DNA from: Chara braunii
Taxonomy: Eukaryota > Plantae > Charophyceae
Direction: 5' to 3'
DNA: 64,000 nt
Assembly: GCA_003427395.1 (NCBI GenBank)
Contig: BFEA01000006.1
Location: 8,111,551 to 8,175,550, forward strand
Made by a program: the position numbers and the translations under genes. The notes beneath the pieces were generated by a model, which saw only the letters and a program-made list of their open reading frames with translations, searched no databases and was not told where the DNA came from. Below are positions 4,263-64,000 of this stretch, one piece after another; within the stretch, counting starts at the first letter, position 1; each line of letters begins with the position of its first letter.

Positions 4263-4383
4263 NNNNNNNNNNNNNNNNNNNNNNNNNNNNNNNNNNNNNN
4301 NNNNNNNNNNNNNNNNNNNNNNNNNNNNNNNNNNNNNNNNNNNNNNNNNNNNNNNNNNNNNNNNNNNNNNNNNNNNNNNNNNN

Positions 4384-4456
<73 letters not shown>
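4226..4456. repeat. (CT)n / N-gap / (GT)n compound microsatellite
   Basis: Seen directly. Similar tracts at 17677-17822, 36207-36404, 44718-44887 and 48054-48130. Confidence 0.95.
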
Positions 4457-4459
<3 letters not shown>

Positions 4460-6110
4460 CGTGCGCACATGATTCCAATTGGATTTTGCCTGTGTTAGCG
4501 ACAGCAAGGTATTGGACGAGAAAATGACTTGCCTACCCTTGTTATGCGTTTCCAGTCCTTCTGCCCTTTTGTCATTCCATTGTGATAGAATATCAGGACC
4601 TAATCATCGTTCTGTAAATAGGGAGTTGTCACCGTGGCCTACATTCTGCAGTGCAAAATAGTGCCTGCCAGCGACCTGTACTCTTACCATCCAGAATTGC
4701 CCTCACAGTGACACTGGCCTATGCACACAGCTTGACTATTGTTTGGGCAAGTGGACTTCAACCTTTTTCTCAGGTACAATTTCAATGTGCGTTTATGCCA
4801 TTTCCTGGTTCACATATTATTGTTTTCTCCCTTTCGAATGGGGAAGTCCCTCACATGATTGCAATCATTACATCTCCGTCCATTACGATTCAAATCTGTG
4901 ATCTATGTGTTAAAAGTCACAGTCTATGCAACCTTTTCAGCGCGCTTAAGCGCAGAGTGTCTGGGCAGCGGTAGAACGGGGGGTCCTCGCTCTAAACTTA
5001 GAGCGGCGTCCTAACACCGCCCTACCCCCGTCCAATCCCCATTGTCCCCCAGTTCAACGGGGTAGACCCCCCCCCGCCAAAGAGCGCCGCGGCCAGCGGG
5101 GAGGGGGCAACCTCATTTCGGTGGCATGGGGGCCTGGCCCCGGCAGTCACGGACCTGCCCGCGCTGCCATTTCTTTTTTGAATTTAAAAACATAATTGAA
5201 AAAAAAGGAAAAACCCCGGGGGTACGAACTGGCAGGCCAGCCGTCAGACCCTTGCAGGGGACCAATGGCTAGAGAGAACCGCCCGGACGCCGCAGCCTGC
5301 ACAATAAGTTGGGCACTCCCAACGGGAGCACTTCCTCACTGCTGGAGGGCAGGCAATCTGTGTGTGTGCGCGTGTGTGTGCGTGTGTGTGTGTGTGAGAG
5401 AGAGAGAGAGGGAGAGAGAGAGACAGTGGGGCGTTGAGGAGTGTTGGGGGGTGTAGGGAGGGGCTACGTGGCACCCTCAGTCTCAGATCCCACGGCCTAG
5501 GAGAAGGCCAAGGAGGCTGCGGCCTAGGCCACTTGGCCGTGCACCTGAGGTCAGGGCGCACGTGCCGCCTGCGCAGGTCGGCCCCCAGCTCCCCCGCCAA
5601 AAAGAAAAAAAAGAAAACTGCAATAAGGTGGGGGGAGGGGGGGTTGATATTCAATTTTTAGAGGGGTGGTAGAAAAATTATGAACCCCCTCAAATCGCAA
5701 ATTTGAAGTTGTGGGGGGGTGGTACGTGTTGCAGACCCCCAATTTGGCAAAAAAATAAAATAAAATTGGCGAGGCAGGTCGGCCATAGGGGGCGGGTGTG
5801 GTTGGGGGGGGGGGGGGGGGGGGTCGCGGGTGGAAGGGTGGGAGGATTTTTCAGGGCCGTGGTGCCTGGTAAGGGTACTAAGGAGAAAGGCAGCGGGGTG
5901 GGGTGGGGGTGGATGGTGCAACTTTGAAGGGCACGGGGTGTTAATGGGGATGTGTAGAGGTGGGGGGGGTGCGGAAATGTAAGATAAAGAAAAGAAAAAA
6001 AGGGCGGCAACGAAGAAGAACAACAAGATGAAAAAAAAAAAAACAGCAAAGAAGAAGAACAACAAGAAGAAGAACAAGAAAAGAAGAAGAAGAAGAAGAA
6101 GACGAAGAAG

Positions 6111-6148
<38 letters not shown>

Positions 6149-6534
6149 GTCATGAACATAAGAAGCACAATTTGTGTTGCCATGTCACAGACGTCACTCA
6201 TTATGTGATACGGCAATGTTGCTCATGCTCCCTGTGGGTGGTAGTCGCCCACCACCCAGACCACACCCACCCCAGCTTGGCCCTTTTTTCTTTGCAATTT
6301 TTTTTTTTAACATCTTTGTTTTATTATAATACCAAATGTCCCAAAAAATATGGCAAAAAAAAGATGAAAAATATAGGAGGGCTCTTACTCCATATCACTC
6401 ATGAAAAAAATTCCTGCTTTTTTTTCTTGTTTTTTTCTTTTCTTTTTTACCAATTTTAGGTTTTCATTTTTTTTAAATTGTAAATCAAGTCAGAATCGTG
6501 TCAGATTCAAAAATACAAATCATAGGGTTGCAAG

Positions 6535-8160
6535 TTTTTTTTTTTTTTTTTTTGAACAAGTTGCAGCTTATATTATAAACGTAATCGAATGAGGCCGGGA
6601 ATCCCTCAACATCTCAACCCGGGAGTGACGCTCGTGCTGGAAACCGGGTCCAGCGTCCCATGGTCTGCAACTCCAAAAAAAGTATGCAACTGGACCAAAA
6701 AGGAAACTCCAACAGCAGAAGTAAAGGGAACAAAACAGCCAAGAAACTATTGACTAATTCACCTCCAAAGTCCTGCTAATCTATCTGGGAGCCTCACCCA
6801 GCTTGGCTTCAAGATCTTACAGAAAAGAGAGCAAGTACCTATATGTAAACTCAAGGAAGCCTGAACCGCCTAGACGGGTTTCCCACCACGCACCCTTAGA
6901 TCTTCAATAGTAACAGCTTCCAGTGTACCAAGATCAGCATGGATACAGTTCAAGTTTGCTTCCATCCCTACTGACACTAACTACAGGCGACTAGCGTTCC
7001 CACCACTAACGGTAGCACTCCCACTGCATCCGTAGTGCCGCTACCCATATTAGAGATATTACCTGATGAGAATGAATGTATTTCCCAAAAATCCCTAAAA
7101 AAACGGAAACTAAGGTGTAAGGAAGAAGGTAGGTCTAACCTATATGAGTGGCTTAGCCCCAAACGAACACACCAATCCAATCTAAGATTAAAGGAAGACA
7201 GAAATACAACCAATAGACAGGCAGAACACCACACTCGTTTCCGTATTATGTCTCTAAAGCGTAGACCAGCTTCAAGTCGCCTGGATTGCCGAGACGGATT
7301 TCCCACCACGCGCCCTTGGATTTCTTTTGAATACCGTGTCATTCCCAATGGGCACAACCCAGTTTTCCCCCTGCATAGCCAGTGCTACCCCCGCTTATGC
7401 TCACTACGGGCTAAAAGCGCTCCCACCACCACTGGAAGCCCTCTCACTGCTGCCAATGGTAACGCTGCTCGTAGTTACGTTGAGTGAGTCCAATATTCCA
7501 AAGAAGGATACAAAGAGTGAACAGCCTTACGCCAACTTTATTATCTCGCTGAGTAACGTGATGATAAGGGGGGACATCCTCAATCTGGTTCACAACAAGC
7601 TAATCTACTAGACAGTCGATTACAGCATACACATGTTCGAAATATTGATCCAACCCCCTTTTTGCTTTCAAAACCAAGATCATGAGAACCAGGGATCGAA
7701 CGTCCAATACAATATGGACTAAAAATAATTCGTGCACAAATAAACGTCAAGACCCAGGTTTCACAGTAGGCCAGAGAACTCCCGCAGGTCCGTTGGTGTC
7801 ACTGCTTGTGAAGGCTGTATTTCATGGAACTGAAGTCTCCAAAACGCAACCTCCAGTGCACACTAATCATTGCATCCTTACCATTGAAGTTACAAGGAGC
7901 TATACGCAGCATTAGTAACCAGATGCACCAGGCCACTGTAGTTTCGACCTCTTCCAGCCCCGCTCCTAACTTCGGAACAGGATGGACAGTGAATTTGGCC
8001 CAAAAAACGGCCTATAATCATGAACAATCTGTTCTCCTATCATGGCCAGGCACACAACTGTAGTTTTGAATGTCTACATAACCCCCGACTTGAAAAGTAA
8101 ATCTAATAACTCTAGCGGCCAACGGGATGGACGAAGAAACTCTACAAGCACATCGGAAGT
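6535..8160 (-). mobile_element. Decayed non-LTR (LINE-like) 3' remnant
   Basis: T-run at 6535-6553 (poly(A) on minus) and the shared 3' motif at 6636-6659. Broken minus-strand coding-like sequence with a duplicated KGAWWE(I/T)RLG segment near 6890 and 7305. Left boundary is plausible; right boundary is approximate. Confidence 0.4.
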
Positions 8161-10330: not shown

Positions 10331-12104
10331 GCGGCTTCCTGGAAGCGGGAATCCTTTGTATTGGCCATCAAACCCACGATCAAGGGCACTGTGAACGCTC
10401 TTTTGAGCGACACTCAAATCCTTGAGCGCCCACCACTCGCTCAGCGCGTGATTTCACAGGTCACAGTCGGCTCTAAGCTGTAAATCTGTGAGGAGCCTGA
10501 GGGAAGACCACATTGGTGCTTCGTTCTTGCATAAGATGGTTATCATAAGACTGGTCGACTTTTACCACTGAAGTAAGGGTACTATCTTCAGAAGTTTGTG
10601 CTTTCTCTTTTTTTCCCCACCAGCAAGAGAGAGGCCTAACCCAACAGCACCTTTCCCAGCTATTTTTTCAGAAGTGCGCCGGATAACGCGCTGGCCTGAA
10701 ATGGAAGGGGGCCGCCCGTAAATCGGATCGGCGGCCAGTCTTGATTTTCGTGCCGACATAAGGGAAAGGTACTCAGTGGCTTAAACTTTAAACCACCAGT
10801 ACACAGCCCCAGCCTTGCAGAAAGAGCAACTCACCGCCACCGCACCGTAGCAATGGCTCAGCCTACCGGATCACTCTGGCTGGCACCGCCAGGCAAAAAG
10901 TGAAAAAAGGACACTGATAGGGTTGGGAAAATCTTGGGCCAAAGTAAGGCACCTCCAGGTGTGAATGTACTGGTGGAATAATGCACATCCGTGCTCATGG
11001 ATTCTGCTGCAGTAATTTGACATTTGCCTGGCCTATCTAAGTTGGCCATATGGGTACCCTTGTCCTGCACAGAACCCCCAAGGTCGGGCTGAGGCCGGCA
11101 GGCCTTGACAAGTGAGGCCCAGGGACAAGTGGAACCAGGTGCCGTTGCAGTCGGGAACCGAAACTCGCCCTCAGCAGTTCGGTGCCTGCCTGAGTTTCAA
11201 CAGCAAACAGAACTCCCGCTGGGAAAAAGGTTTTCTGAGGGGAGTTCAGCAAGATAAAGAGTTTGGGCAACGGCTCCTGGGTCACTCGGACTCACACCTA
11301 CAGTTTCGTCACTCGGACTCACACCTACAGTTTCGAATAGTCGACTTTAGCCTTTCTCGAAACGAGGCAAAAAACGAAAAGGGCCCAATGCCAGGTTATG
11401 TACAAGATCCAGAATAAGGAAGGGAAGAAAAAGGTCCAGTGCCATTAAGAGAGCAAAGCTTGTGTACAACATGCACTGGGTACCGCGCAAGCGTGGAAGC
11501 GCAGCCACTCGGGAGCAAGACCGGCCGGCGGCCAGGGCTTGAAGCGTTCGACTTGCTTGCTTGCCCGCTACTGCTCCACCCCACCATGGTCGCTGCCCCG
11601 GCCTGCCAACTGATCTATGATGGCGGAAAAACAACGACTGCATCTTCCCATAGAGAAGGGCAAGATGCATCGGTTACTATGAATACCAACTGATGCATCT
11701 TACCACTTTCTGCTGAAGATGCATTCATTCTCTTTCCTTTCGACAAAGGTGTGGCGAAGCCCTAACTCCTCCTGGGAAAAACAACGAGTGCATCTTCCCA
11801 CACAGAAGGGAAACATGCATCCGTTACTACGACAGCACATCATGACGCGTGAATTCGAATAGAATACTAATTCGAACACCCCGACTGCCACCAGCATTCT
11901 GCTGTGCACACCTGCAAACCCACTTCGGCCCGGCCTTCCCGATCCGAATCCGAAAATCGCACCCTCGCGATATCGCCCGAAATGAAAAACCGGCCGCCGT
12001 CCATGAAAACGGCCCGCCTACCGCTTTTCCTGACCGCTGATCTGACCTTCTCCAACCGCACTCGCGACCACCCGGCCTACCGGTCTCTTCCCCAACAGCG
12101 ACCG

Positions 12105-14801
12105 TGTGATGCGCAACCTCACGCCCAGTGTTGTCTTCCGTTCGGAGTGTTAGGCATGCGAAAGGAGGTCCAGAAAAACAGCAAGATGGGGTGTGCCAAG
12201 GATTTTTGGGAAATTGAGTGTGGGGACTCAGACGGAACTGAAATCCCCCGTGTTGGTCCGATGGAGCAAGTCGATCGTTTTCGCCCGTCGCGGAATGCAC
12301 GCGCGGGCAAGGCGCGAAGAGGGAAAAATCCAAATTCAATCTAAAAAGTATTGCCAGGCTTCCCACTGTGCTACGGCCCGTCGTTTAGAACGGAAGGGCT
12401 CGGGCACACTCCGTGTGTCTCGTTTTCGTATCAAATCCCGTCGTCGTTCGCTGGTCAGTTCTGAGTCTGACGTGGAGGGTCTCAGCCGCGTGGCTCGTTC
12501 TTTATGCTCGTCTTAACTCCGCACACGGTAGTGGAAACCCCTGGATTCGTAGCGCTCAAAGCGCTGACACTCGGTACATAGAGTGCGCGGCCAGTGGGGT
12601 TCTACTGCCGTCCACGGGATGACGATCAACTCGTTGAATGGCAACAATATCGAATAAGGTGGGAAGTTCGTATCGATAATGATAAACTCGGCTTCTACGA
12701 ATCCTGCACAACGGTCGGCCAGAGGGAAGTAGTATTGTTCGTCGATTTGTGCGACGGCTTCTCGTACGTCCCACTCACATACACGTGTCCTTTCCTTGCT
12801 GTAGGGAAAAGGTCGCGTTGGGATGGGAGATACGGGAGGCTGGTGCCCAATCGAAGGGTACGTGTCAGTCCACATGTCAATCAATCGCAAATATCCCGAG
12901 ACGTCATTAAGGACTGAAGCATTCGCGCGACCCCCAATCAATCATTTTGACACAAGAGAGGGAGCAAACACGCATGAGCTTGATCATGCATATGGTTAAG
13001 GGACCGATCAGCTCAACACAACGTTGGTCCCTGGCGCCTTGTTTCACAAGGCGGCCCGGTGGTTCGGTCGCTGATGTCGTGCAACATAAGGCAAATGGCA
13101 TGCGCAATGCTCTCGAGACAACAAATCTAAACACTCTTGCATTCTCGAGCAAAATCCCGACGACAATCGTCTAATCAACACGAAAAGAGTCACACGTTTC
13201 CAAACATGCATTCACTGTGGAAGGTGCGAAAATGAGACATGCACAGGAAAAGATAGGTCGCATTGCACATTACACACGCATCCACCGTTCACAAGACAAG
13301 AAGACGGGGTCCTTGTATAGGAGGATTGCCCAGGAAACTAATGGAAGAGTTCCGGAAGAAGTTCTTTCACACAGACACAGGATGCCGACTCATTCTCATT
13401 CAAGGGAGGGACAATCATTCAGACGTATCGTCATTCAAAAAGAGAAAGAGAGAGAGAGAGAGAAAGAGAGTCGAGGAATGTTAGAATAGAAGATGACAAG
13501 GTCCAGAAAGAGAAAAGTTTGGCATCACCGCCGTACACTCACGCCAAGGATAACAATCCGCAACACGGGCGCATTCGCCTTTAATTCCAATATGGCCCCG
13601 GGCCAATCACTCACTCAACTCCAATCATCGATCCTCATACCCGCACCGACGATCCTGGCTGTCGCGTGCTAACTCCCACCACTGCGATCGTCACCCCGCT
13701 GTCGTAAACTTGACACGGTTTGCCCGGATCCCACAGTTCGTCGTGGCGATCAAGCGCGCAACCGGCCAGCCTATCGTCAACCGGACAGGACTTTCCGACT
13801 CGCATCAACCGACTTTGCCTAGCCACTGCTTCCCCGAAGATGGCTTAGGAGTCGAGAACGTAAGAGAGATTTGTAGGCGCGCTTGCGGGTTTTATAGTTG
13901 CGAGAAAGGAGATAGAAGGGGGAGAGAACGATGGGAAGGCGGGGGTGTAGGAGGCGAAGGAGGAGAAGATTCTGAGAAGAGTGCTCTACGAGCGTCATTG
14001 TGATTCCTCGGAACTCAGGGTTCAACCAATCAGATTCGTCGCGTGATAGGAAGGTTCGATCGATCCACGCACCTGATTGGCGAGTGGGAGTTATTGGGGG
14101 ATCGACCGGGCGTCGTACGTCAGACTTAGAGGGTGAGAAGAGAAAAGGCACGAGAGGTGGCGCAAGATGGGTCCAAGATTCAGATGATCAAGAAAGGGAA
14201 ATGGGCGCGCGAAAGCAAGGCGGGAGAGAGAGAGAGGGAGAAGGAAAAACAATTACGGGGAGAGAGAAAAAGGAGGGAGAAGGGAAGGAAGGTGCGGGAG
14301 GGGGCGATGCGGGGAACAGAGAGGAGGAAGCTTTTGCATGCACGGCGCTATCGACAAAAAAAAAAAAAGGCACCGAAAAAGTTACAGCTTGCTTCTTTCC
14401 TAATTCAAAATTGAAATCACCATATCCGCGCGCGAAAAAGCAACGCGGGAAAATAAAATCCTACGCTTATTCGTATTCACGCAAAATTCCGAGAGTTTTC
14501 CCCGACGCGCCCAAGAACATTCACACACCCAAAGAAGACACGTCGAAGTTCCGCTTATCCCGGAATCCCCAACTACCGAGCCCAATTCCCAGCGCGCTCG
14601 CTAAGGCGCGCGCAAATTCTCATGTATTTCCCGACTTTACAAAAAGAAAACCAGAACTCGGCAGTCGAAAAAGCTCTCAGAAAAAGGAAAATGCGGCATC
14701 CGAAAACAAGAAATCGAAACGAGGTCTTTCTGGGGTTGGTATGATACAGGCAAAAGAAAGGGTACGAAAGATGTCATGGGTTCGAAAAGTGGTTCGTCCC
14801 A
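12105..14801 (-). repeat. 3' LTR
   Basis: Co-linear with 24098-26787 and 35358-38230. Confidence 0.95.
12350..12941 (-). pseudogene. LTR-encoded ORF, copy in the 3' LTR with a premature TAA at 12513
   Basis: Homologous to 24318-24920 and 35591-36139. GAA>TAA relative to the other copies. Confidence 0.65.
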
Positions 14802-15267
14802 TATGTGACGCGCAGGGGGTTCCAAAATTATGTGATCTCCTGATTGGATGTTATGGCGGACGAGGAGAGAGGAAGGGGCAGAACAGAGTGATGCATGAGG
14901 AACCAATCATATCAACAAAGTTTGAGAAAGAAGCACAAGGAGCGATAACCGAGCCGCGGATGAGATGGCGACAACATCCATGGCAAGATCTCCGCAGCCC
15001 TGTCATATGCAACCCTCTGCCTTGTGGAGATCATCCAGGTGGCGCCATCATGGTCCACCTGATATCAGTGTGCTCTGCACCCCAGCTCGTTGCTGTCCGT
15101 CGAATCAGAGTGTAGGTTGACGTCATCATCGATGGCGTGATCTTCGCGAAGCTTACTGATTCGTGCTGATGAAGAGAGGAGAGAGGGGGGTGGGGCACGC
15201 GGGTGGGATCTACCGCCTAGTTGGAATAGGCCAAAGATAGAGAGAGGAGCGAGAAGATTGGCGTGGT

Positions 15268-15750
15268 TCATTGAGGAAGGGGGAAGGGGACGAGGGTTGG
15301 GATCACAACTGGAGCCTTGCGTGGTGATCGGTGAATACCGTCAAGATCCGATGCAAAGATCAGGATGATGTTATACCCTTCCCGGACGAGGACGTGCTGC
15401 CATACGTTGGACAGTTGCTCCGTCCACTCGCGCAGCGAGGCCAAGATCGCGGTATGCCTCAGCGGGTTGACCGAGCTGATGTCGTCGGTGAATCATGCCC
15501 CAGTGGTGACGTGGCTCGTTCTGGGACCCGCTCGCCGATGAACTGCAGTAACCTCCGCGAACACTATCACGTGAGGGTTTCCTTCTATCTGAAACGCGGC
15601 GGCGGCACAGATACCTTCGTCGCAGAAGAATCGCATCAAACGACGAAGATCCGTATTGAGCCGAGGGTGACAAACTTGCCGAATCTCTGAGATGTGGCCA
15701 CGTGGTTGCCGCAGCTGTTCCTCAAGAACCCGCTCCGTGATAAAACTCAT
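15268..15750 (-). pseudogene. ~160-aa unknown ORF immediately after the integrase (one internal TGA at 15493)
   Basis: Manual translation MSFITERVLEEQLRQ...TTGA*FTDDISSVNPLRHTAILASLREW...VPFPLPQ*. ATGA overlaps at both ends. Confidence 0.55.
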
Positions 15751-17071
15751 GGCGAGGTTGGAGAGGAGGACGAGGGACAAGAGGGAGAAAGAGGAGAGAG
15801 GGTTAGATCATCGTCGTTTTCCTCGCTTTCCGAAGAAGAAGAGGGAGGAGGATCGGAAGGAGGAAGGAGACGGAGGTAGGAGGTATGTCGGACGATGGGG
15901 ACGGAGCTATGGCTGGTCCTAGCCTCAGGCGCGATGCGCACCGTCTTAGCGCCGTTGGGTCCGAGTTCGACAACGGGAAAACAGCCAGAGAACTTGGGAG
16001 CGAGTTTCCGGTCGCGTGCACATTTACGTACCTGCACTAGGTCCCCCAATTTAAACTGGTACAAGGGCCCAGCATTTCCGTTCCGGGCCTCGTAGCTACG
16101 GACCTGTCTACCGCGGGCCAGCTCGGTCATCCTTTGTCTTTTGCGGGGTAGCTTCAGAACGGCCTGTTCCATCAAATCGGTGTACCTTTTGGCTTTGGCC
16201 TTGAGGGCCGCACGCGTGTCTCTACCCTCTGCTTTGGCAATTTCCAAGTTACCCCGGTAATCGACACAGGGGAGGCTATTAATTCGAAGCTGAAATGGGG
16301 TGAACCCCATAGACTCGTGAGGGGTGGCCCGGTGGATGCCGACGATCTGATATACGATCTCGGGTCAAGGACGCGTGTCGTGTGCCGCTAAGTTCCTGCG
16401 AAGGGCGATTTTAATCATACGGTTGGCATTCTCGGCCAACCCGTTCGATTGGGACACGTGGGGTGCCGTATGTCGGAGCGTGATGCCCCTTCGCGCAAGT
16501 AGTTTTTCTACCTCACCTTAAAATTGAGATCCATTGTCGGTTAGAATTTCTTCTGTATTTAAATGGGTATAGAGGAACCGTTCGATGTACGTGGCTCTTT
16601 CTGCGGCCTTTCGGGTCTTACAGGGATAGACTTCGATATACTTGGAAAAGTGGTCAATTAATACTAATAGAATAGAATATTCACAGCGGTTTGGGCCAGG
16701 TGGCACGTCAATATCTGTCGTGTCCATACTGACTCGCTGGAAAGGACGCTCTACTTCCGTTGGTACGATCGTGTTTGGTCCCCGTATAGCGGCGCGATCA
16801 GCGGCACAGACCAGACAGTTAGCGACAATGTATTTCACATCATCTCGTATTGGACCAAAACCATCGGTTCTGGTCTACAGTTGCCTCCGTGACACGTATC
16901 GCGAAATGAACGGCTTGTTCTTCTTGAGCAGATCTTATCCAATCGTATCTCTGGAAGGGATGGGGAACTGTCAGCCATGAACCCGATCAGTCGGTTTTGC
17001 GCTTTTCCAAATGACCATTGATCCATCGATAGTTCCGAGATCTCTCGGTCGCCCTACGTGTGTCGTGTTTG
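15747..17071 (-). pseudogene. Retroviral-type (rve, DDE) integrase, disrupted
   Basis: YRWINGHLEKRK..WLTVPHPFQRYDWIRSAQEEQAVHFAIRVTEATV..RWFWSN / DDVKYIVANCLVC (zinc-binding region); PFQRVSMD, LIDHFSKY, ILTDNGSQF, SNGLAENANR, GFTPFQL, FKLGDLV, KLAPKFSGCF. Stops at 16987, 16518 and ~16365, and a frameshift at ~16843. Confidence 0.9.
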
Positions 17072-17377
17072 CTGAGGTGGCCCAATAACAGCGATTTTGT
17101 CAAAACGGACATTTTATATTTTTCGAACGAAATTGGAATTGTGATTTTCATGCTGATTTTTTGCGTTTTGAGCACACCATTTTGAGTAGGTTCCCCGCAT
17201 TGTTTATAGTTTGTGCTCATGTTTGCCACAAGTTTTACATTGCTTTCTCACACATTTTGGGTGGTGTTACAGTTTCATTCGCATTATGTGAAGCTATAGG
17301 CGTCTTCATTATGGGTTTCTATTGTACTTTTCTACCATATCGATTAACATTTACTATGTTTCGCAATATAATATCAT

Positions 17378-17673
17378 TTATTTTTTGTTTTTTACTGACA
17401 AATGCATTAAGACAACAGGCACATATTGAATATCATACTCAAAAACACATATGGCAGGTTCAGTCAATGACAAAAAAACTTCATGGACATCTATAAATGT
17501 TTGAGACTTTTCGTGCAACCCAAGAATTACGAATAACGTTATGTGAATCTTTTCGAAGTTCATGTAAAAAAAATTGACTTCTTTAGATAAATACAAAGCA
17601 ACATTGATGCGGATTTTGGCTCATGCGACATATGATACATGTGCGCGGAAATATATGTACATAGAGAGACTCC

Positions 17674-17717
<44 letters not shown>

Positions 17718-17767
17718 NNNNNNNNNNNNNNNNNNNNNNNNNNNNNNNNNNNNNNNNNNNNNNNNNN

Positions 17768-17825
<58 letters not shown>

Positions 17826-18201
17826 ACTAAGACAATGTCTATGAAAGTTGGTGCCGTAGAGTTCATACACTCCTCCACACTACTGCTGATGTGCAGTCGT
17901 ACATGATCGTACAAAAGGTGGAAATCCAATTCGACATAATTTTGAAAAAAAAAACCCCTAAAATCCGGCACATGACGATAAAAAATGATATGAGCACTCG
18001 TACGAGCGCATGATCTACTCTATTGCCATCTCCGTCAACAGTGCTAAGCTACAACTTTTGTACAACAAAATGTCCGGAAGTGCTACAGCGGCGCAAGTCA
18101 ACAAGGTCGTTGCTCAGACCGTTGGCTCGACGGAGTACACTCTTCGCAATGTTGAAGTTGGTGGTTAACTTGATTTTTTTGAATTTGCGGTTGACCCCCA
18201 T
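17378..18201 (-). pseudogene. Decayed unknown ORF(s) inside the RH-IN interval
   Basis: ATG at 18201 lies 3 nt after the 18205 stop (TAA-aca-ATGG; MGVNRKFKKIKL...). Continues as broken frames 17621-17971 and 17378-17596, interrupted by a microsatellite and gap. Confidence 0.35.
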
Positions 18202-18204
18202 TGT

Positions 18205-18753
18205 TTATTCGTTCTCTACGATGACTGTTGAGATAGAAGCAGTGATGGCAGTCCTCCGAGCAACAAATTCTAACATTGCATCCCGAGCGTGAATACAATA
18301 TTGTTTAACGTGCTGCTTGTACGCTCGCACCATCGAGTCTCCTGCATCACTCCTCGGGATCTTTTGTCTCCATGTCTTCGTTGCACATATTGTAAGCCCT
18401 TCATGGTATTGAACAGCAACACATGCAATGGTGGCGCTGCATTTCTCTGTCACCAGGGCAGCCACAAGGCCGTAATCGTAGAATACCTCCTTGCATCTTG
18501 CGTTCCCGTCCTTCTTGTAATTATTATTATTATGACGGTCGCACACCCCCACGAGGTTGTAAATCTTTCTTCTTGCGCTTAGAGGATACAAGTGCAGTGA
18601 GTCCAGTGACGGTTCGTAATATGCAAAATCCCAGGTGACAAATCCGATGGCGTTACGTTGTCTCCTCAGCCGGTCTGATATCAGTTCCCCCCATTTGATT
18701 GGCGTTCCCCACCAATCTTGTCTTAACTGCCTCTGCATCCATTCCGAATCCAT
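18205..18753 (-). CDS. Unknown protein B (domain X paralog)
   Basis: MDSEWMQRQLRQDWWG...KEVFYDYGLV...IACVAV..EGLTICATKTWRQKIP...RDAMLEFV...ENE. Preceded by a polypyrimidine tract and TGCAG. Confidence 0.65.
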   Translation of the reverse strand: MDSEWMQRQLRQDWWGTPIKWGELISDRLRRQRNAIGFVTWDFAYYEPSLDSLHLYPLSARRKIYNLVGVCDRHNNNNYKKDGNARCKEVFYDYGLVAALVTEKCSATIACVAVQYHEGLTICATKTWRQKIPRSDAGDSMVRAYKQHVKQYCIHARDAMLEFVARRTAITASISTVIVENE

Positions 18754-18833
18754 ACTGCACAGACCAATACGAAAAAGATAAAGAGAGAAAAAAAAAAAGA
18801 AACACATACATCAAAAGCACAGATGAACGTCGG

Positions 18834-19599
18834 TTAATGCGGATAAGCACGCAAGACGGATTGAAGGTTGTTCCGTTTGCCACTTTCGCGCCGATGAATA
18901 TGATCGACGATATAAAACTTTGTAACGGTGTTAGTTTTTTTCAGTTTTTTCATTTTACCCTCTTCGTTGTGGCATGTTATCATGGTCATCGCCACGTGAA
19001 TGGCGACCCTCGACCTTTCGTTGATGACACGCAACATTGCATCTTTGATTTCGTTGAATAGACGTCTGACAAGCTTCAGCGTCGCCCTCCTGTAGTTGTT
19101 GTTTTTGAACGTCGACGGCACCTTCATTCGTTCAATCCGTGTTGCGCACCGTGTCAGACCACCGTCAGAGCAGAACGCCACGCACGTTACCGATCCATGA
19201 TGCTCACCCCCCGTACCCCACATGTGAACAAACCCCAATCCGTAGAACACTTCGGTCCATTTGCCGGAGTCGTGGCTTCCGAAGTTCGCCAATAAAATTT
19301 TATCTGTCCAGACTTCCGCCCGTCGTTATTTTTCGTCATATTGAGGACCATCTGTACGGGCGGCCTCGAATCGAACCTCCGTGGGGAGTTTGTTCGTTCT
19401 ACACAGGGGGCACCTCCATTCCTTGCTACTCGTCCGATATTGAACACAGGCCCCGTACGCACGATTGACACACGTGGCACATTCTACCCAATCGACAAAC
19501 CCGGTCTCGAAAGGAGGACAGTCGACCCCATAAACCCATGCAATACACGTGCAAAAATAATAGAACTTATCGGGGAGGGTGGCGAAGAAAGCTGAGGAA
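18834..19599 (-). pseudogene. Unknown protein A: PHD finger plus domain X (no ATG; one internal TAA at 19326)
   Basis: Manual translation YFCTC...DWVECATCVNRAYGACVQYRTSSKEWRCPLCR (19553-19401), in the same frame as ORF 18834-19292. Confidence 0.7.
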
Positions 19600-19714
19600 C
19601 TAAGATGGGTCGAATTAGCAGGAGAAGAAGGGTTACGGAAGCAAGCGGGGCAGCCATGACGACAAAGGGGGAGAGATGGGGCTGAATAATGGAGAGAATT
19701 AGTCGGCGTGTCAC

Positions 19715-22700
19715 TTACTGCTTCGACAGGATCTCAACTTGGCCGTACCGAGGTCCGATCTCCTGTTCGGGTTCGTTCCACGGAATCACCTCCTCACTCT
19801 TCAGAACTTTCTCAGCCCGGTGCAATCGTGTCAGTCCGTCTGTGTTCCCGTGTCTCTCGTGCTTCCGATGACGGATATCAAAGTCCATGCTCTGCAGCAC
19901 CGTTGCCCATCGCCCGATCATGCCCGAGTAATCCTTTGACTTCTTCAGAGCCAACATGGCTCATGATCAGTCACCAGGGTGAATTTTCATCCGTACAGGT
20001 AAGCACGAAAGTGACTGATTCCTCAAAGGGCCGCGTAACATTCTCCCGTTGGAGCGGCGTAGTTGCGCTTGCAGGCGGGCACTGATTTGGATGCATACTC
20101 CACCACATTCTCGAGTCCGCTTGGTCCCACCGGGGCAAGGATCGCCGAAATCGCCTCTGGCTGCCAGTCAATGATGAGAACAAAAGGTTTTTCGGGATCC
20201 GGTCTTATAAGGACCGGAGCCGAAATGAGAGCAGCCTTGAGTTTGGAAAACGCTTGATCGCACTCCGGCGTCCAGATCAACGACTGATCCTTGCGCAGGA
20301 GATTTGTGAGGGGTCCCGCAGTCGCCGCGAAGCCCTTGATAAATCTTCGGTAATACGAGGCTAGGCCCAGAAAGGCGCGAACTTGCGTGATGGTGGTAGG
20401 CACCGGCGCGTCCCTGACAGCTGCCACCTTCTGCGGCTCCGGTTGGAGTCCCTTGTCTATCACCACGTGCCCCAGGAAAGAAATGATGGTGAGGAAAAAC
20501 TGGCACTTCTCAAGCGCCACCTTGAAACCTGCATCTCGTAACGCATGTAGTGCCCATTTGATGCGCTGCACGTGTCCCTCGTAGGAACTCGAATACACTA
20601 TGATGTCATCCATGTACACGATCACGCAGTAGTTGATGATGTTTTGCGTCAAACGAGTCTTCTGCACGAAATTCTGAAAAGCCATGTTCATGGCCCGCTG
20701 GAAGGTCGTTGGGGCGTTGCAGATACCCATCGGACATCGAATCCATTGCCACGTGCCTTCGAAAAGCACAAACGCTGTTTTCGGTCGATCTTCCTCTCGG
20801 ACAAGAAGATGATGGAACTCATGACGAACATCAAACTTGCTGAAAAATCGAGCACTTTCAATCGCATCCAATAACTCATCAATCCGGGGGAGGGGATACA
20901 CATCTTTAATCGTGATATCATTCTGTTTTCGATAACCAATGCAAATGTGAATCCCTCCAGCCTTCTTGGGTACTATCACTACAGACCATGGTCCTATAGC
21001 GGGTTCAATCCATCCATTAGCTTCGAACTCTTTAATCCGCTGAAAAGTGGTCGCTCGTTGAGCTGGCGAGTATCGGTAGGGAGCGCAGCTAATGGGCGGA
21101 TGATCTTCTGTGGGAATGGCATGTTCAATTACATTAGTTAACCCAATATCATTGTCATGCACGCTCAACACTTCTGCGTAACCATTCAATACATAGATTA
21201 ACGATTTTCGCAGTTCCGCGGGAACGTGACTTGGGAGGGGGATCGTCGATTCCCCGGATATATTAAGGGGTATATCGATCCAATCAACCGGTCGTTCCCA
21301 CCGCTCATGGACACTAGAGAAAACGGAACTACTGGTGCGAACAGAAAAGACAGTTGCTATCATCTGGGACTCAGCGTGGCTGATCATCTCCGTTTCTTTA
21401 GTTTCAGCGTCAGTCTCTAAACCAACCGAAGTCGGTTCCACCGTTAGCCCTGTTAGATCCGTCATTTCTTGCATTAGATTCGACACGTAACTTACGGGTG
21501 CTTCCGCTTCTTGTTTAATTAAGGCGATGGAGACTCCCGTCCTTAGTAATGATCGGGGTGGAAAAACAGAAACGTCCAAATACTGTTTCGTTTGCTGATA
21601 ACGCGTTCGTAAGGAAAGAGCTCCCTCGTACAGGGTGCGAGGGGGTTCCAAATCATCAGCCAGATCAGAAACTTGTAATATGGGTTCCCCGAGGAGGACT
21701 GAAGGACTAACCTGGGTTGCTAGAGGCGTGAATGCACTGTCTTCAGAATCCACGTGGAAGCTTCGAGCGGTGTCGGGACACACTCGAAATTCTTCGGGGG
21801 TTTCATGTTCGAAAAGTTCAACCAGATGCTTCCATTCCTCTTTACTGGGCATCTCTTCTTCATATTCTTGCTCCCTGATTCCATCCCCGAGGCGCGAGAG
21901 GGAGCATTCCTTGAGATTAATGCCTCGGATCATCCCTATTAGGGCTGAGTTAGAGACCCGTTTTATCGTTCGGGTGGAGACTCGCAAAGGAACAGTTTGA
22001 GGTTTTCCCCCATTTTGTGTGAGCACCAGCTGCTTCGAATCGAAATGCAGACGTGCACCCACTGCCATTGCCCAAGGTAATCCCAACAACACAGAGTAGG
22101 AGCGTACATCTATTACAAGTGCATTAACAAGGATGTGTACTCGCCCGACCTTTACCGCCACGTTCTCGATAATGCCTACAATGTTCATTGCTTCCTCGTC
22201 GGCAGAGACATAGTTGTCTTTGCCAGATTGAGGAAGAATGGATTTGAGTCGTCCCGTCTTTTTTATAGTCTCCAATGATATGGCCACTGCAGAAGACCCT
22301 GTGTCGATTAGGGCATTAAACGGCTTACCCCAAACTTCACAGTCACATTCCGCACTTTTCCATAGTATTGGTCGAGCTCGTACGAAGTGATCCTTTTCCG
22401 CTAAAGAGATGGCGGCTATGCGTGCGGCTTCAGGTTCTTTAGTGTCCGGCTCAGGGGATACCACTTTCTCACCTTCTTCCTTCTTCTTCAACATCCGTTG
22501 TATGCGTTGATTGGTGAAACGCTTTTGATTTTTCTGGCAGTGTTGTAAAAGTTTATTGTTCGCCGCTTCAGATATGGTGAGCAGATGCCCTACGGGGATA
22601 GGAACGCGGATGTCTAATTGCTTGAGCGTTTTCAGTACATCAATATGCCCTGTCCGAAATTGTGGTCCAGGATTGGATTCGCGATCGACCGACTCGAGAT

Positions 22701-22875
22701 CATCCGGAACCGATCGGATCGCTGCGATCATGCCTGCGAGATGGAGATACTCGAGAGGATTGACCACGTCAGCAACGTCGGGGGAAGAAGCTCCTGATGT
22801 CGACGCCGTTGCTATCGAAGGGGAAGACTGTTCTGGAGTATACGCTACGAGCTCTCTTCCCTGGTCCGTATCCAT
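19715..22875 (-). pseudogene. pol: Pol: aspartic protease, reverse transcriptase, RNase H (no integrase; disrupted in RH)
   Basis: ALIDTGSS, YPLPRIDELLD, MGICNAPTTFQ, YMDD, RAFLGLASYYRRFI, IDWQPEAISA, GECYAAL, TDHEP, GRWATVLQ, HGNTDGLTR. Ends GQVEILSKQ* at 19715. Confidence 0.93.
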
Positions 22876-22887
22876 CAGAGCGGCTAC

Positions 22888-24003
22888 TCATCCTTGATTA
22901 AGGGCGACAGGGGCCGCAGCAGGGGGAGGCTGATTACGTTTCGGCTCCGGACAGTCTCGGGCGAAATGCCTGGGCTGTTTGCAGTTAAAACACTCAATCT
23001 TTCCTGTTGGATTAGCTGGATGAGAGAACTGCAGTGCGTACCCTGGTGCAGGCGGAGTAGGCAAGAGTGGAAATGGTGCGGGGGCAGGCCGAGTAGGGGC
23101 CAGGTTAGGCTTAACTAGCCGGTTCATTATCTGTTCCATACGTTCCATGTGAGCCGCCTGCATCTCGATCAAGTTGCTCATCCACTCGGACTGCTTGGTA
23201 GTGGCCGTATGGATCATCTGGGCGAGACGTAAATTGGTTATGGCTGGCGAGGGGGGTTCAGGTGAGACTCTGTTTTTTACTGTCGCGATCGATTGGTTCA
23301 CGGGGGGAGAGGAGGAAGAAGCAGGCAGGGTATCGAAGACGATTCCGCCTAAGAGGTCATGGTCGGGGCGGGGATAAAACCGTTCGACCGCCTGCAACCA
23401 CGATCGCCTTTTAGCCGTTACATCCCGTATAGTATCCGTGATGTCTTCGTCTCCCTGGCTGATATACTTTTTTGTATCAGCCAGATCTAATTCCAAAGCT
23501 TTAGTTATGATAGCCGATAACGGGTGTGTTTTCGGCGGAACCTTCTTCTGTAACTTCCCTTTCAGTGTCGAACTTCGTAGGTGATCGATAAACAGATCTC
23601 GAGCGGATTTCTCATCTCGCCTGGATTTGTCCAACGTGGTTTGAAACCGATCGACAAAATCGGGCAACAGTTCCCCTGGTCCTTGAAGTCGACTTTTGAG
23701 TACATACCAGGCAGCATCTTCACTAACCGTATCGAATCGAGCCAAGAAAGTTCGCTTGAAAGTATCCCAATCTACCCACGTATGTTTTCTAAACCAGTCA
23801 TGCGACGTATTACGAAGTAGCAATGTCAGAACTCGGGGAAGATCGGTTGCACTGTAGTTTTGAGCTTCGACAGCTTCTAGCCAAGCGTCAGGATGGGTAT
23901 GGTTAGGGAAGAAGGGGAAGGGGGCAGGGATGCTAACAATCACCCTAGTATCGTCCACCATTGGTATTGCGGGTGCTACCGCTCCAGCCTGAGACTTGGT
24001 CAC
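22888..24003 (-). CDS. gag: Gag with CCHC zinc knuckle, same frame as pol
   Basis: WDTFKRTFLARF, QGPGELLPDFVDRF, CFNCKQPRHFARDC. True start uncertain. Confidence 0.9.
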   Translation of the reverse strand: MTKSQAGAVAPAIPMVDDTRVIVSIPAPFPFFPNHTHPDAWLEAVEAQNYSATDLPRVLTLLLRNTSHDWFRKHTWVDWDTFKRTFLARFDTVSEDAAWYVLKSRLQGPGELLPDFVDRFQTTLDKSRRDEKSARDLFIDHLRSSTLKGKLQKKVPPKTHPLSAIITKALELDLADTKKYISQGDEDITDTIRDVTAKRRSWLQAVERFYPRPDHDLLGGIVFDTLPASSSSPPVNQSIATVKNRVSPEPPSPAITNLRLAQMIHTATTKQSEWMSNLIEMQAAHMERMEQIMNRLVKPNLAPTRPAPAPFPLLPTPPAPGYALQFSHPANPTGKIECFNCKQPRHFARDCPEPKRNQPPPAAAPVALNQG

Positions 24004-24084
24004 TCGGCGATCCCGACGAGCTAGTTGAGGGTCTTTCCTAACTATCGCCAGTTCGACTCACTATCATCAGAACCGACACGTGTC

Positions 24085-24097
24085 GGCTCCGATACCA
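24085..24097 (-). promoter_or_regulatory. Primer-binding site for initiator tRNA-Met
   Basis: TGGTATCGGAGCC against the canonical TGGTATCAGAGCC, directly adjacent to the 5' LTR. Confidence 0.9.
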
Positions 24098-26787
24098 ACC
24101 TCACGCCCTGTGTTGTCTTCCGTTCGGAGTGTTAGGCATGCGAAAGGAGGCCCAGAAAAACAGCAAGATGGGGTGTGCCAAGGATTTTTGGGAAATTGAG
24201 TGTGGGGACTAAGACGAAACTTAAATCCCCCGTGTTGGTTCGATGGAGCAAGTCGATCGTTTTCGCACGTCGCGGAATGCACACGCGGGCAAGGCGCAAA
24301 GAGGGAAAAATTCAAATTCAATCTAAAAAGTATTGTCGGGCTTCCCACTGTGCTACGGCCCGTCGTTTAGAACGGAAGGGCTCAGGCACGCTTCGTGTGT
24401 CTCGTTTTCGTATCAAATCCCGTCGTCGTTCGTTGATCAGTTCCGAGTCTGACGTGGAGGGTCTCAGCTGCATGGCTCGTTCTTTATGCTCGTCTTCACT
24501 CCGCACACGGTAGTGGAAACCCCTAGATTCGTAGCGCTCAAAGCGCTGACACTCGGTACATAGAGTGCGCAGCCAGTGGGGCTCTACTGCCGTCCACGGG
24601 ATGACGATCAACTCGTTGAATGGCAACAATATCGAATAAGGTGGGAAGTGCGTATCGATAATGACAAACCCGACTTCTACGAATCCTGCACAACGGTCAG
24701 CCAGAGGGAAGTAGTATTGCCCGCCGATTTGTGCGACGGCTTCTCGTACGTCCCACTCACATACACGTGTCATTTCCTCGCTGTAGGGAAAATGTCGCGT
24801 TGGGATGGGAGATACGGGAGGCTGGCGCCCAATCGAAGGGTACTTGTCAGTCCACATGTCAATCAATCGCAAATATCCCGAGACGTCATTAAATACAGAA
24901 GCGATTCGCGCGACCTCCAATCAATCATTTTGACACAAGAGAGGGAGCAAACACGCATGAGCTTGATCATGCATATGGCTAAGGGACCGATCAGTTCAGC
25001 ACAACGTTGGTCCCTGGCGCCTTGTTTCGCAAGGCGGCCCGGTGGTTCGGCTGCTGATGTCGTGCAACATAAGGCAAATGGCATGCGCAATGCTCTCGAG
25101 ACTACAGATCTAAACACTCTTGCATTCTCGAACAAAATCCCGATGACAATCGTCTAATCAACAGGAAAAGAGTCACACGTTTCCATACATGCATTCACTG
25201 TGGAAGGTGCGAAAATGAGACATGCACAGGAAAAGATAGGTCGCATTGCANAGTACACACGCATCCACCGTTCACAAGACAAGAAGACGGGGTCCTTGTA
25301 TAGGAGGATTGCCCAGGAAACTAATGGAAGAGTTTCGGAAGAAGTTCTTTCACAGAGACACAGGATGCCGACTCATTTTCATTCAAGGAAGGGACAATCA
25401 TTCAGACGTATCGTCATTCAAAAAGAGAAAGAGAGAGAGAGAGAGAGAAAGAGAGCCGAGGAAAGTCAGAATAGAAGATGACAAGGTCCAGAAAGAGAAA
25501 AGTTCGGCGTCACCGCCGTACACTCATGCCAAGGATAACAATCCGCAACACGGGCGCATTCGCCGTTAATTCCAATATGGCCCCGGGCCAATCAATCACT
25601 CAACTCCAATCATCAATCCTCATACCCGCACCGACGATCCCGGCCGTCGCGTGCTAACTCCCACCACTGCGATCGTCACCCCGCTGTCGTAAACTCGACA
25701 CTGTTTGCCCAGATCCCACAGTTCGTCGTGGCGATCAAGCGCGCAACCGGCCAGCCTATCGTCAGCCGGACAGGACTTTCCGACTCGCATCAACCGACTC
25801 TACCTAGCCACTGTGTCCCGGAAGATGGCTTAGGAGTCGAGAACGTAAGAGAGATTTGTGGGCGCGCTTGCGGGTTTTATAGTTGCGAGAAAGGAGATAG
25901 AAGGGGGAGAGAACGATGGGAAGGCGGGGGTGTAGGAGGAGAAGGAGGAGAAGATTCTGAGAAGAGTGCTCTACGAGCGCCATGTTGATTCCTCGGAACT
26001 CAAGGTTCAACCAATCAGATTCGTCGCGTGATAGGAAGGTCCGATCGATCCACGCACCTGATTGGCGAGTGGGAGTTATCGGGGGATCGACCGGGCGTCG
26101 TACATCAGACTTAGAGGGTGAGAAGAGAAAAGGAGCGAGAGGTGGCGCAAGACGGGTCCAAGATTCAGATGATCAAGAAAGGGAAATGGGCGCACGGAAG
26201 CAAGGTGGGAGAGAGAGAGAGGGAGAAGGAAAAACAGTTACGGGGATAGAGAAAAAGGAGGGAGAAGGGAGGGGAGGCGCGGGAGGGGGCAATGCGGGGA
26301 ACAGAGAGGAGGAAGCTTTTGCATGCACGGCGCCGTCGACAAAAAAAAAAAAAAGGCACTGAAAAAGTTACAGCTTGCTTCTTTCCTAATTTAAAATTGA
26401 AATCACCATATCCGTGCGCGAAAAAGCGACGCGGGAAAAGAAAATCCTACACTTATTCGTATTCATGCAAAATTCCGAGAGTTTTCCCCGACGCGCGCAA
26501 GAACATTTACACACCCAAAGAGGACACGTCGAAGTTCCGCTTATCCCGGAATCCCCAACTACCGAGCCCAATTCCCAGCGCGCTCGCTAAGGCGCGCGCA
26601 AATTCCCATGTATTTCCCGACTTTGCAAAAAGAAAAACAGAACTCAGCAGTCGAAAAAGCTCTCAGAAAAAGGGAAATGCGGCATCCGAAAATAATAAAT
26701 CGAAACGGGGTCTTCCTGGGGTTGGTATGATACAGGCAAAAGAAAGGGTACGGAAGATGGCATGGGTTCGGAAAGTGGTTCGTCACA
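24098..26787 (-). repeat. 5' LTR (lacks the terminal 11 nt present on the 3' LTR)
   Basis: Co-linear with 12116-14801. Starts TGTGACGAACC on the minus strand. Confidence 0.95.
24318..24920 (-). CDS. LTR-encoded unknown protein (sense to the element)
   Basis: Open frame, conserved in all three LTR copies with many synonymous changes against the solo LTR. Confidence 0.7.
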   Translation of the reverse strand: MEVARIASVFNDVSGYLRLIDMWTDKYPSIGRQPPVSPIPTRHFPYSEEMTRVCEWDVREAVAQIGGQYYFPLADRCAGFVEVGFVIIDTHFPPYSILLPFNELIVIPWTAVEPHWLRTLCTECQRFERYESRGFHYRVRSEDEHKERAMQLRPSTSDSELINERRRDLIRKRDTRSVPEPFRSKRRAVAQWEARQYFLD

Positions 26788-27164
26788 ACCGCACCCTTCA
26801 ATTACCCATGTTACGGCCCTATAAACCCCTTTCGCCATTGTCGGCATTTCCTGAAAAAGACGTCCTCGCTACGCGACAAAATGGAACCGGTATAGCGCAG
26901 CCTCCTGGCTGCGAACAATCAGAAAAAAAAAAAAAAAACCATCAAAAAATGTCTGTATCCTTTGCACAGTCAAAAAGCTGATCCGAAGTTCAGTTCCTGA
27001 ACTGTGCCGTCAACTGTCACCTATGACGGACAGGCCGGCCAATGCTTTCTAAACCATTTGGATTTCCGCAACCAAAGGTGCCACGCCTTTACGTCTCCTC
27101 TGCCAGTGCAAGACGATAACATGCATGGACTCTTATCTTCTCTTTTTTTTCTTTTTTTTGTTCT

Positions 27165-62969: not shown

Positions 62970-63400
62970 AGGTGGGGGGAGGGATGTTCTCACTACGATC
63001 GGAGAAGACCAGTTCCCGAGTCTGGAGATGGAATGGGTCGCAGGTTCGGGTGACGGGTCGGGGTCAGGGTCAGGTGCGAGAGGTCGGGTCGGGATCGGGG
63101 GCAGCCGGGATGAAACAGGCGGGAGGAAGGAGGCGATGAGATGGACGGGATTGGGTTCAGCGGGAAGGACGGGATTGGGTTCAGTGGGAAGGAGAGGTGG
63201 GGGGAGGGATGTTCTCAGTACGATCGGAGAAGACCAGTTCCCGAGTCTGGAGATGGAATGGGTCGCAGGTTCGGGTGACGGGTCGGGGTCAGGGTCATGC
63301 GCGAGAGGTCGGGTCGGGATCGGAGGCAACCGGGATGAAACAGGAGGGAGGAAGGAGGCGATGAGACGGACGGGATTGGGTTCAGCGGGAAGGAGAGGCG
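62970..63400. repeat. ~228-bp tandem duplication in the LINE 5' UTR
   Basis: ggtggggggagggatgttctca(c/g)tacgatcggagaagaccagttcccgagtc... at 62971 and 63196. Further shorter repeats at 63470-63740. Confidence 0.85.
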
Positions 63401-64000
63401 GAAAGAGCGGGATCGAGGTACAGGTCGGGACGGGCGGCGGGCGACGAACAGGGGCGCGATTGGGGTTGGGGTAGGGGGCAGGTTAGGATGGGGTGGGGGA
63501 TGCGCGGGGTCGGGATCGGGGTAGGTAGGGATGATTCAGGTTGTCGGGGGCGGGTCGGGGCAAGGAACAGTTGGGTCGGAGGGCAAAAATAGGAGGGAGA
63601 GGTCGGGGTCGGGATCACAGTCCGGGACAGGTCAGGATGGGGTGAAGGAAGCGCAGGATCGGGACCGGGGTAGGCAGGGATGATTCAGGTCGGCGGGGGC
63701 GGGCCGGGACAAGGAACAACGGGGTCGGAGGGTGGCGGGTTAGGGTCGGGGAAGGAGCGAGAAGACGGGTTGGAGTAGGAGTGGGAGAGACGGGTCGTGA
63801 GTTGGGGTAAGATCTGGAAGGAGGGACAGGGATCGGGATCGCAGTAGGGAGGAATAAGGCTTAGGTCCGGATGGGAGGGGGGTGGGTCTGGACGAGGAAC
63901 AGCAGAGGGTCAGGGGTGACGAGATTGGGGGGAGGAGGACAACCCACCAACCAAGAACCTCAGAAAAATCTCTCATAGCCCAGACCCGACATACAACAAC

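Follow-up and report, generated by a model that had tools for sequence, protein, structure and literature searches.

The 64,000-nt stretch of Chara braunii DNA analysed here (contig BFEA01000006.1; hereafter the window, with coordinates counted from its first letter) carries a long terminal repeat (LTR) retrotransposon whose inserted termini do not coincide with the two ends of its LTR. By gene content, primer binding site (PBS) and target-site duplication (TSD) the family is Ty3/gypsy. We propose that in this C. braunii Ty3/gypsy clade the ends used by integrase differ from the two LTR ends, and that the ends of the complementary DNA (cDNA) are joined before the junction is cut at CA^TA^TG. 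We hold this proposal with a little more than even confidence.

Self-comparison identifies three 2.7-kb repeats in the window. The coding signals between the first two all lie on the minus strand, which places the start of the element at 26787 and its end at 12105. Its 5' LTR (24096-26787, minus strand) starts with TGTGACG at 26787 and ends ...GGGCGTGAGGT at 24096. It has no terminal CA and is directly adjoined by a PBS of the initiator-tRNA-Met type, TGGTATCGGAGCCGACAC (24078-24095, minus strand), as an earlier, preliminary description of this DNA had reported. The 3' LTR proper (12116-14801, minus strand) reads from TGGGACG, for which the family form is TGTGACG, to the same ...GGGCGTGAGGT; self-BLAST gives 95.2% identity between the 5' LTR and 12114-14798. 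Beyond U5 stands a single T (12115, minus strand), equivalent to the first base of the PBS, and then an extension, GCGCATCACA (12105-12114, minus strand), which provides the terminal CA. With T and extension the 3' LTR spans 12105-14801. The extension is a copy, with one CpG change, of an internal segment that we term X (GCGCGTCACA; 14804-14813, minus strand), which appears to be the right-hand integrase end kept internally. X is separated from the 3' LTR by a TA spacer (14802-14803) at the centre of the palindrome CGTCACA-TA-TGTGACG, where the staggered integrase cut is proposed; in element sense the whole region reads TTTTGGAACCCCCTGCGCGTCACA-TA-TGGGACG. The flank before the TGTGACG of the 5' LTR reads ...CGGT, and the 3' end reads GGGCGTGAGGT-T-GCGCATCACA followed by CGGT. 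The element thus lies between identical copies of the TSD, ACCG on the plus strand, at 26788-26791 (upstream in element sense) and 12101-12104 (downstream in element sense).

The palindrome had been recognised in the preliminary description, and at 14795-14819 the plus strand indeed reads cgtcccaTAtgtgacgcgcaggggg. Position 14799 is A instead of C in about 99.8% of the depth in DNA contigs of the same species, so the family form is a perfect 16-bp palindrome, CGTCACATATGTGACG. The three outer ends given there also stand. On the plus strand these are TGTGATGCGCA joined to ACCTCAC (12105), TGTGACGCGCTA joined to ACCTCAC (35358) and TGTGACGCGCAGGGGA joined to ACCTCAC (44495). The second belongs to a solo LTR of the same family (35358-38230, minus strand) with a 12-nt extension, TAGCGCGTCACA in element sense, and the TSD AACC at 35354-35357 and 38231-38234. 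The third is the outer end of a diverged LTR (44495-44517, minus strand), where a 16-nt extension, TCCCCTGCGCGTCACA in element sense, is joined to GTGAGGT. Perfect 4-bp TSDs lie outside the extension (ACCG and AACC), which indicates that the extension was inserted as part of the element.

The layout was surveyed in 390 kb of sequence comprising the window and 12 further C. braunii loci (L001-L012), fetched through proteins related to the reverse transcriptase open reading frame (ORF); the proteins of these loci are 91% down to 47% identical to the window protein. Sites were tallied by sequence pattern over the 390 kb, and three copies outside the pattern were added. All copies come from one species and one assembly with many N gaps, several internal segments fall within N runs, and L008 and L009, in which the 3' end falls in a gap or beyond the locus, were counted for their 5' junctions only. 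The 5' LTR ends GTGAGGT followed by TGGTATCGGAGCC in all 13 cases, matching the window junction. All nine sites before a 3' LTR consist of (T)TGGAACCCCCT plus G(C/G)GCGTCACA, then TA (in 8/9) and TGTGACG. All 17 outer 3' ends read GTGAGGT, then T, then sequence ending CACA. Perfect 4-bp TSDs were found in six insertions (ACCG, AACC, CTAC, TATA, GGTC and ATCC).

Extension length had been thought to differ with each insertion, and this was taken as a sign of an imprecise plus-strand start. The survey does not bear this out. The extension is 11 nt in ten of the 17 ends, 12 nt in four, 16 nt in two and 9 nt in one; length is mostly fixed, and imprecision is not general. The tabulation of copies had also been expected to show an invariant palindrome and extensions that always match the internal flank. 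The palindrome layout is kept at 9/9 sites, and the extension tracks the internal segment.

The match between the extra terminal sequence and the internal site, noted in the window, extends to co-variation in three lineages, marked by TGCGCG, TGGGCG and TGCGTA. In the window lineage the internal segment and the extension are TGCGCGTCACA. The second lineage has TGGGCGTCACA (L007, L010, L012:22183 and, in decayed form, L001:747), and includes a copy, L010, whose reverse transcriptase region is about 49% identical to that of the window. In the third (L004, minus strand), TGCGTATCACA is found in both internal segment and extension. In the L004 lineage, moreover, both arms of the palindrome have changed together, TATCACA with TGTGATA, a paired change that would be expected if one integrase reads both ends. 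The sequences thus support the view that the extension is a copy of the stretch that directly precedes the 3' LTR in the same element. The 3' U5 and what lies beyond it are not in the transcript, so the extension must be re-made from the internal copy in each cycle. Two other sources were considered and rejected. Derivation from the tRNA primer or PBS fails because the extension does not have the PBS sequence and co-varies with the internal segment. Inheritance within U5 is impossible in standard reverse transcription and is contradicted by the 13/13 5' junctions.

T is the first base of all 17 extensions. This holds even for the 16-nt class, whose internal counterpart has C at this place, and for the 12-nt class, which starts TA or TC. 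The simplest reading of these sequences is that U5 is followed by T and then by n bases of X, with a mode of n=10 and variants of 8, 11 (one extra base) and 14-15. The T equals the first PBS base and would be templated by the 3' A of the tRNA, provided that RNase H spares this A on the minus strand. In HIV-1 (human immunodeficiency virus type 1), RNase H does leave the tRNA 3' A on the minus strand. A residual tRNA A as the joining residue had been suggested in the preliminary description, and the single T after U5 in 17/17 ends fits. The 12-nt class is less simple. Three insertions with different TSDs share the identical extension TAGCGCGTCACA with one extra A: L002:18409-18420 (TATA), L012:20288-20299 (ATCC) and window 35358-35369 (AACC). 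The extension in L011, TCGGGCGTCACA, has one extra C. The class represents either an inherited variant of the internal segment (in each of these copies that segment falls within an assembly gap) or a recurrent one-base addition at the joint.

These observations constrain how the element could be inserted. Inserted copies have the form LTR-PBS...X-TA-LTR-T-X, a circular permutation of the expected linear cDNA, so U5+T must be joined to the start of X. The right end of U5, GTGAGGTT, lacks CA, and the expected linear cDNA is therefore not insertable as it stands. Clean 4-bp TSDs and TG...CA termini imply that CA^TA^TG, with its CA from X and its TG from U3, is the site used by the DDE integrase. 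That the ends are joined and CA^TA^TG used follows from the sequences; integrase cleavage itself is predicted. A Pfam scan of 14 minus-strand ORF pieces found no tyrosine recombinase family and did find an rve integrase. Two in vitro studies report that the integrases of PFV (prototype foamy virus) and HIV-1 cleave a palindromic LTR-LTR junction (PMC1180852; PMC1905944), and, for PFV, that only two nucleotides lie between CA and TG and are lost on cutting (PMC1180852).

How the plus strand starts bears on the left end of the cDNA. The preliminary description had found no polypurine tract (PPT). This is correct to the extent that no purine run adjoins U3, the 30 nt upstream reading ...TTTTGGAACCCCCTGCGCGTCACATA. 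A signal that could act as primer is nevertheless present, namely a conserved 12-mer, TTGGAACCCCCT, that directly adjoins the copied 10 nt of X on the upstream side (14814-14825, minus strand) and recurs inside pol. The 12-mer is recognisable at all nine sites before a 3' LTR and exact in six. The window lineage has one pol copy (21640-21651, minus strand), a candidate central plus-strand primer site; other lineages have two, spaced 156 nt apart, the second of which has 19 nt in common with the 3' site. Of 12 pol copies drawn from four lineages, 11 carry the identical 12-mer. There is no synonymous change in its L-E-P-P codons, and the sole substitution (L001) is non-synonymous, whereas synonymous variation is seen in the adjacent codons for D, R, L, E and G. 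From its position and conservation we infer that the 12-mer is a candidate non-purine plus-strand primer standing in place of the PPT, with the pol copies in the role of a central PPT.

Upstream of the 12-mer, at a distance of 6-7 nt, alignment and pair counts reveal a small conserved hairpin of 6 bp with an (A/G)GGA loop (window 14832-14847, minus strand, where it is decayed; L007:15601-15616; L010:16930-16945). Its stem is ATC/GAT or AGC/GCT according to lineage, with one covarying pair, UA to GC. Separately, the last 11 bases of the 12-mer and the first 7 of X form a sense 18-mer, TGGAACCCCCTGCGCGTC (window 14807-14824, minus strand). This 18-mer has the form of a PBS for an RNA ending ...GACGCGCAGGGGGUUCCA-3', as it starts with TGG, the partner of CCA-3'.

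The proposed route can be summarised as (i) the plus strand would be primed by the conserved RNA 12-mer UUGGAACCCCCU, with DNA starting about 10 nt before TA and sometimes 8 or 14-15; (ii) the resulting linear cDNA, X-TA-LTR-PBS...X-TA-LTR-T, would have no usable right end; (iii) this right end (U5+T, the T coming from the retained 3' A of the tRNA) would be joined to the left end (the start of X), either by host end joining, giving a two-LTR circle, or by an end-to-end template jump of the reverse transcriptase; (iv) the DDE integrase would cut the junction at CA^TA^TG, yielding two 3'-processed ends with 2-nt overhangs, and insert them with a 4-bp stagger. Junction first and integrase cut second is, in our judgement, the most likely order, at slightly better than even odds. 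It covers both the circle route and part of the reverse transcriptase jump considered below, and to that extent it overlaps with its rivals.

Several observations weigh against this proposal. Two concern the primer: a pyrimidine-rich RNA primer would be an unusual choice for RNase H selection, and the pol copies of the 12-mer encode a conserved LEPP peptide, such that part of the conservation is at protein level. A third concerns the joint. In a tree of the U5-proximal LTR the three 12-nt copies fall with 11-nt copies in one broad, weakly supported clade, and there is no clean clade of 12-nt (TA+10) insertions. The remainder concern the junction. Among the 15 best-supported joints listed from same-species DNA contigs, which are short, there is no back-joint from 14814 to 12116. 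A two-LTR circle contains two identical palindromes, and unbiased cutting would give roughly half permuted copies of the form LTR-T-X-TA-LTR-PBS-internal-X. We found none: 0/9 5' LTRs are preceded by X-TA, none of the 17 ends has a tandem U5-X-TA-U3 junction, and 0/9 X sites lack an LTR. Nor does the 390 kb of assembled DNA contain a U5-T-X-TA-U3 junction. The lack of permuted copies argues against a simple two-LTR circle with unbiased cutting. Something must therefore set the junction apart from the internal palindrome; it could be nicked, lie close to an end or already carry bound integrase. The circle route of the preliminary description thus survives in part. Joined ends and the use of CA^TA^TG by a DDE integrase are supported; a covalently closed circle, given the 5' LTRs without X and the lack of tandem junctions, is not. 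The absence of permuted copies favours a jump by the reverse transcriptase, a cut that precedes joining, or a modified circle route.

The reverse transcriptase jump requires no closed circle. Once the plus strand has been extended over U5+T, where its minus-strand template ends, its 3' end would switch to the opposite terminus of the cDNA, engage the minus-strand 3' end there and copy X-TA-U3; integrase would then cut the resulting nicked or flapped junction, or concatemer. The product would be the same, and nicking of the junction would account for the sparing of the internal palindrome, which is fully duplex. The one-base insertions at the joint (A in three ends, C in one) resemble the non-templated additions of end-to-end template jumping; that three independent insertions share the same A, however, looks more like inheritance than non-templated addition. 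Displacing a strand to enter a duplex end is an inefficient reaction, and the case for the jump is purely inferential. Taken as a full alternative, we consider this unlikely.

Cutting could also come first and joining later, which we likewise regard as an improbable order of events, on a par with the jump. Integrase bound at the linear left end would cut the end-proximal palindrome (10-15 bp of X, TA, U3) on both strands and carry out a concerted insertion of the U3 end together with the short X duplex. Linking U5+T to X would then fall to host end joining. The final structure would be the same, with the same heterogeneous joint between U5+T and X (T, TA or TC; 8 to 15 nt of X). The palindrome 2.7 kb further inward, never used among the copies examined (0 permuted copies), would be ignored because engagement is limited to a palindrome close to a DNA end. 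In vitro, retroviral integrase does cut junction palindromes internally (PMC1905944). This order would, however, leave the chromosome with a double-strand break, to be sealed by linking a 10-bp duplex to the distal end of a cDNA 12 kb long, and nothing would hold the U5 end, which lacks CA, in the complex. We know of no precedent for such a route.

The last alternative, that nothing unusual is present and that a nested element at 14804, mis-set LTR boundaries, assembly error or post-insertion decay produced the appearance, could draw on the many N gaps of the assembly and on the age of the window copy (LTRs 95% identical), and is very improbable, as the copies examined refute a nested element or boundary artefact: the layout recurs in 12 further loci of several lineages, and matching 4-bp TSDs lie beyond the extension; the junction of 5' LTR and PBS does not vary; extension and internal segment change together; no 5' LTR ends TCACA, and no nested element begins at 14804; and since standard reverse transcription makes the 3' U5 from the 5' U5, a longer 3' U5 would not be heritable.

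Comparison with known systems places the proposed joining of ends before integration in context. Like canonical Ty3/gypsy elements (Metaviridae), the Chara family has the order gag-protease-reverse transcriptase-RNase H-integrase, a DDE (rve) integrase, a tRNA-type PBS at U5 and long direct LTRs, and the inserted element is bounded by TG...CA and a short TSD, of 4 bp here. Unlike them, its LTR is not itself bounded by TG...CA (U5 ends GTGAGGT), it has no polypurine tract, and its right terminal inverted repeat lies before the 3' LTR and is re-copied outside the 3' LTR in each cycle. As a result of this re-copying of X, the two LTRs of a fresh insertion would differ by T plus 8-15 nt ending CA.

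The palindrome resembles the two-LTR-circle junction of retroviruses. That junction too is a CA-NN-TG palindrome at which a DDE cut gives two processed ends (PFV, PMC1180852; HIV-1, PMC1905944; PMC4372172), and in PFV, as in Chara, just two bases are lost. In retroviruses the junction arises only once the ends join, the linear DNA is itself competent, and the circle route is accessory and disputed. In the Chara family, by contrast, the palindrome is genome-encoded and the linear cDNA would lack a right-hand CA, so that the joined form appears obligatory.

A formal parallel comes from Ngaro, PAT and some DIRS-like elements, which have split repeats of the form A1-internal-B1-A2-B2. There an internal B1-A2 junction preserves the terminal information that the transcript lacks, and an inserted copy corresponds to a joined form in permuted order. 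The preliminary description had pointed to such split direct repeats, and the layout LTR-internal-X-LTR-X, with an X of 10-15 nt, is confirmed. These elements differ in that they encode a tyrosine recombinase, have no DDE integrase and make no TSD, whereas in Chara the B repeat is only 10-15 nt, the integrase is of the rve type and TSDs are 4 bp. The resemblance is one of shared logic, not of membership. In lentiviruses (central PPT) and Ty1 (second PPT), an exact copy of the 3' plus-strand primer is repeated within pol. The repeat in pol is common to these elements and to Chara; the Chara 12-mer TTGGAACCCCCT differs in being pyrimidine-rich, and its putative role as primer comes from position and nucleotide conservation. 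Literature searches found no description of such a layout for an LTR element with a DDE integrase.

Textbook reverse transcription produces two identical LTRs whose outer ends are the substrates of integrase. Many independent insertions in Chara record a product that this linear pathway cannot make. Taken as a whole, the picture would be that of a clade with thousands of C. braunii copies whose linear cDNA is uninsertable, whose ends are first joined (as a circle or an equivalent form) and then opened at a genome-encoded CA^TA^TG, and whose plus strand is primed by a non-purine 12-mer. For this combined statement our confidence falls slightly short of even. If true, it would be a natural, obligatory form of the circle-junction attachment (att) site model that was earlier proposed and then abandoned for retroviruses, and elements with an integrase would have converged on the split-repeat logic of tyrosine-recombinase retroelements. 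Whether an end-joined junction can serve as integrase substrate has been debated for retroviruses since the 1980s, and is still debated for foamy viruses and for HIV two-LTR circles. The Chara family offers a natural system in which to ask whether a DDE integrase regularly uses such a substrate. The candidate 12-mer suggests that plus-strand priming need not rely on a polypurine tract. At a practical level, LTR-finding software that expects identical LTRs, TG...CA at each LTR and a PPT will misplace the boundaries of this family.

The word depth of the LTR in same-species DNA contigs, 10^4 to 10^5, indicates an extremely abundant family, and it is one of the most abundant repeats of C. braunii. 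Coding content in the window follows the order given above (minus strand, 5' to 3'). It comprises gag with a CCHC zinc knuckle (22888-24003; Pfam zf-CCHC and Retrotrans_gag), an ORF for protease, reverse transcriptase and RNase H (20023-22875; aspartyl protease, RVT_1 at 2.6e-27 and RT_RNaseH_2) and a DDE integrase interrupted by stop codons in this copy (15750-16874; rve at 4.2e-09 and rve_3). The best protein matches to the window element are all from C. braunii. The PBS of L006, TGGTATCAGAGCC, is the classic plant initiator-methionine PBS. ARAGORN, run on the 12 loci L001-L012, found no tRNA gene in them.

Oligo-dT RNA reads (run X10) over window positions 11900-15300 cover the LTR on both strands at low depth and mostly at 85-95% identity, which indicates that sense and antisense transcripts arise from other members of the family. 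These sparse two-strand reads gave no transcript starts or ends. In soil-metagenome runs X5, X6 and X8, 5-10% of the sampled LTR words are present; this could reflect DNA of Chara or related charophytes in soil, or a conserved part of the element in another organism. A pattern scan of metagenomes for ends of U5 plus extension gave 120 loci, all of them chance matches without LTR context, and is uninformative on other organisms. In L004 an otherwise complete copy has a 3' LTR (15992-18932) far more diverged from its 5' LTR (4547-7285) than is the case elsewhere, with a branch of about 0.21 against 0.01-0.03 in other copies. Conversion, a chimeric origin of the LTR or a wrong join during assembly would be likely causes.

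Within the window element, about 2.8 kb between RNase H and integrase (16875-19717) has no Pfam match and contains, near 17600-17850, an N run flanked by GA/CT microsatellite. Tandem arrays with an 8-nt period and one common unit occur at 4317-4481 and 48011-48151, with weaker matches at 17741, 36296, 44787 and 47125. Near the end of the window are two tandem duplications, at 62970-63394 (about 225 bp, 97% identical) and at 63452-63732 (about 149 bp, 80% identical).

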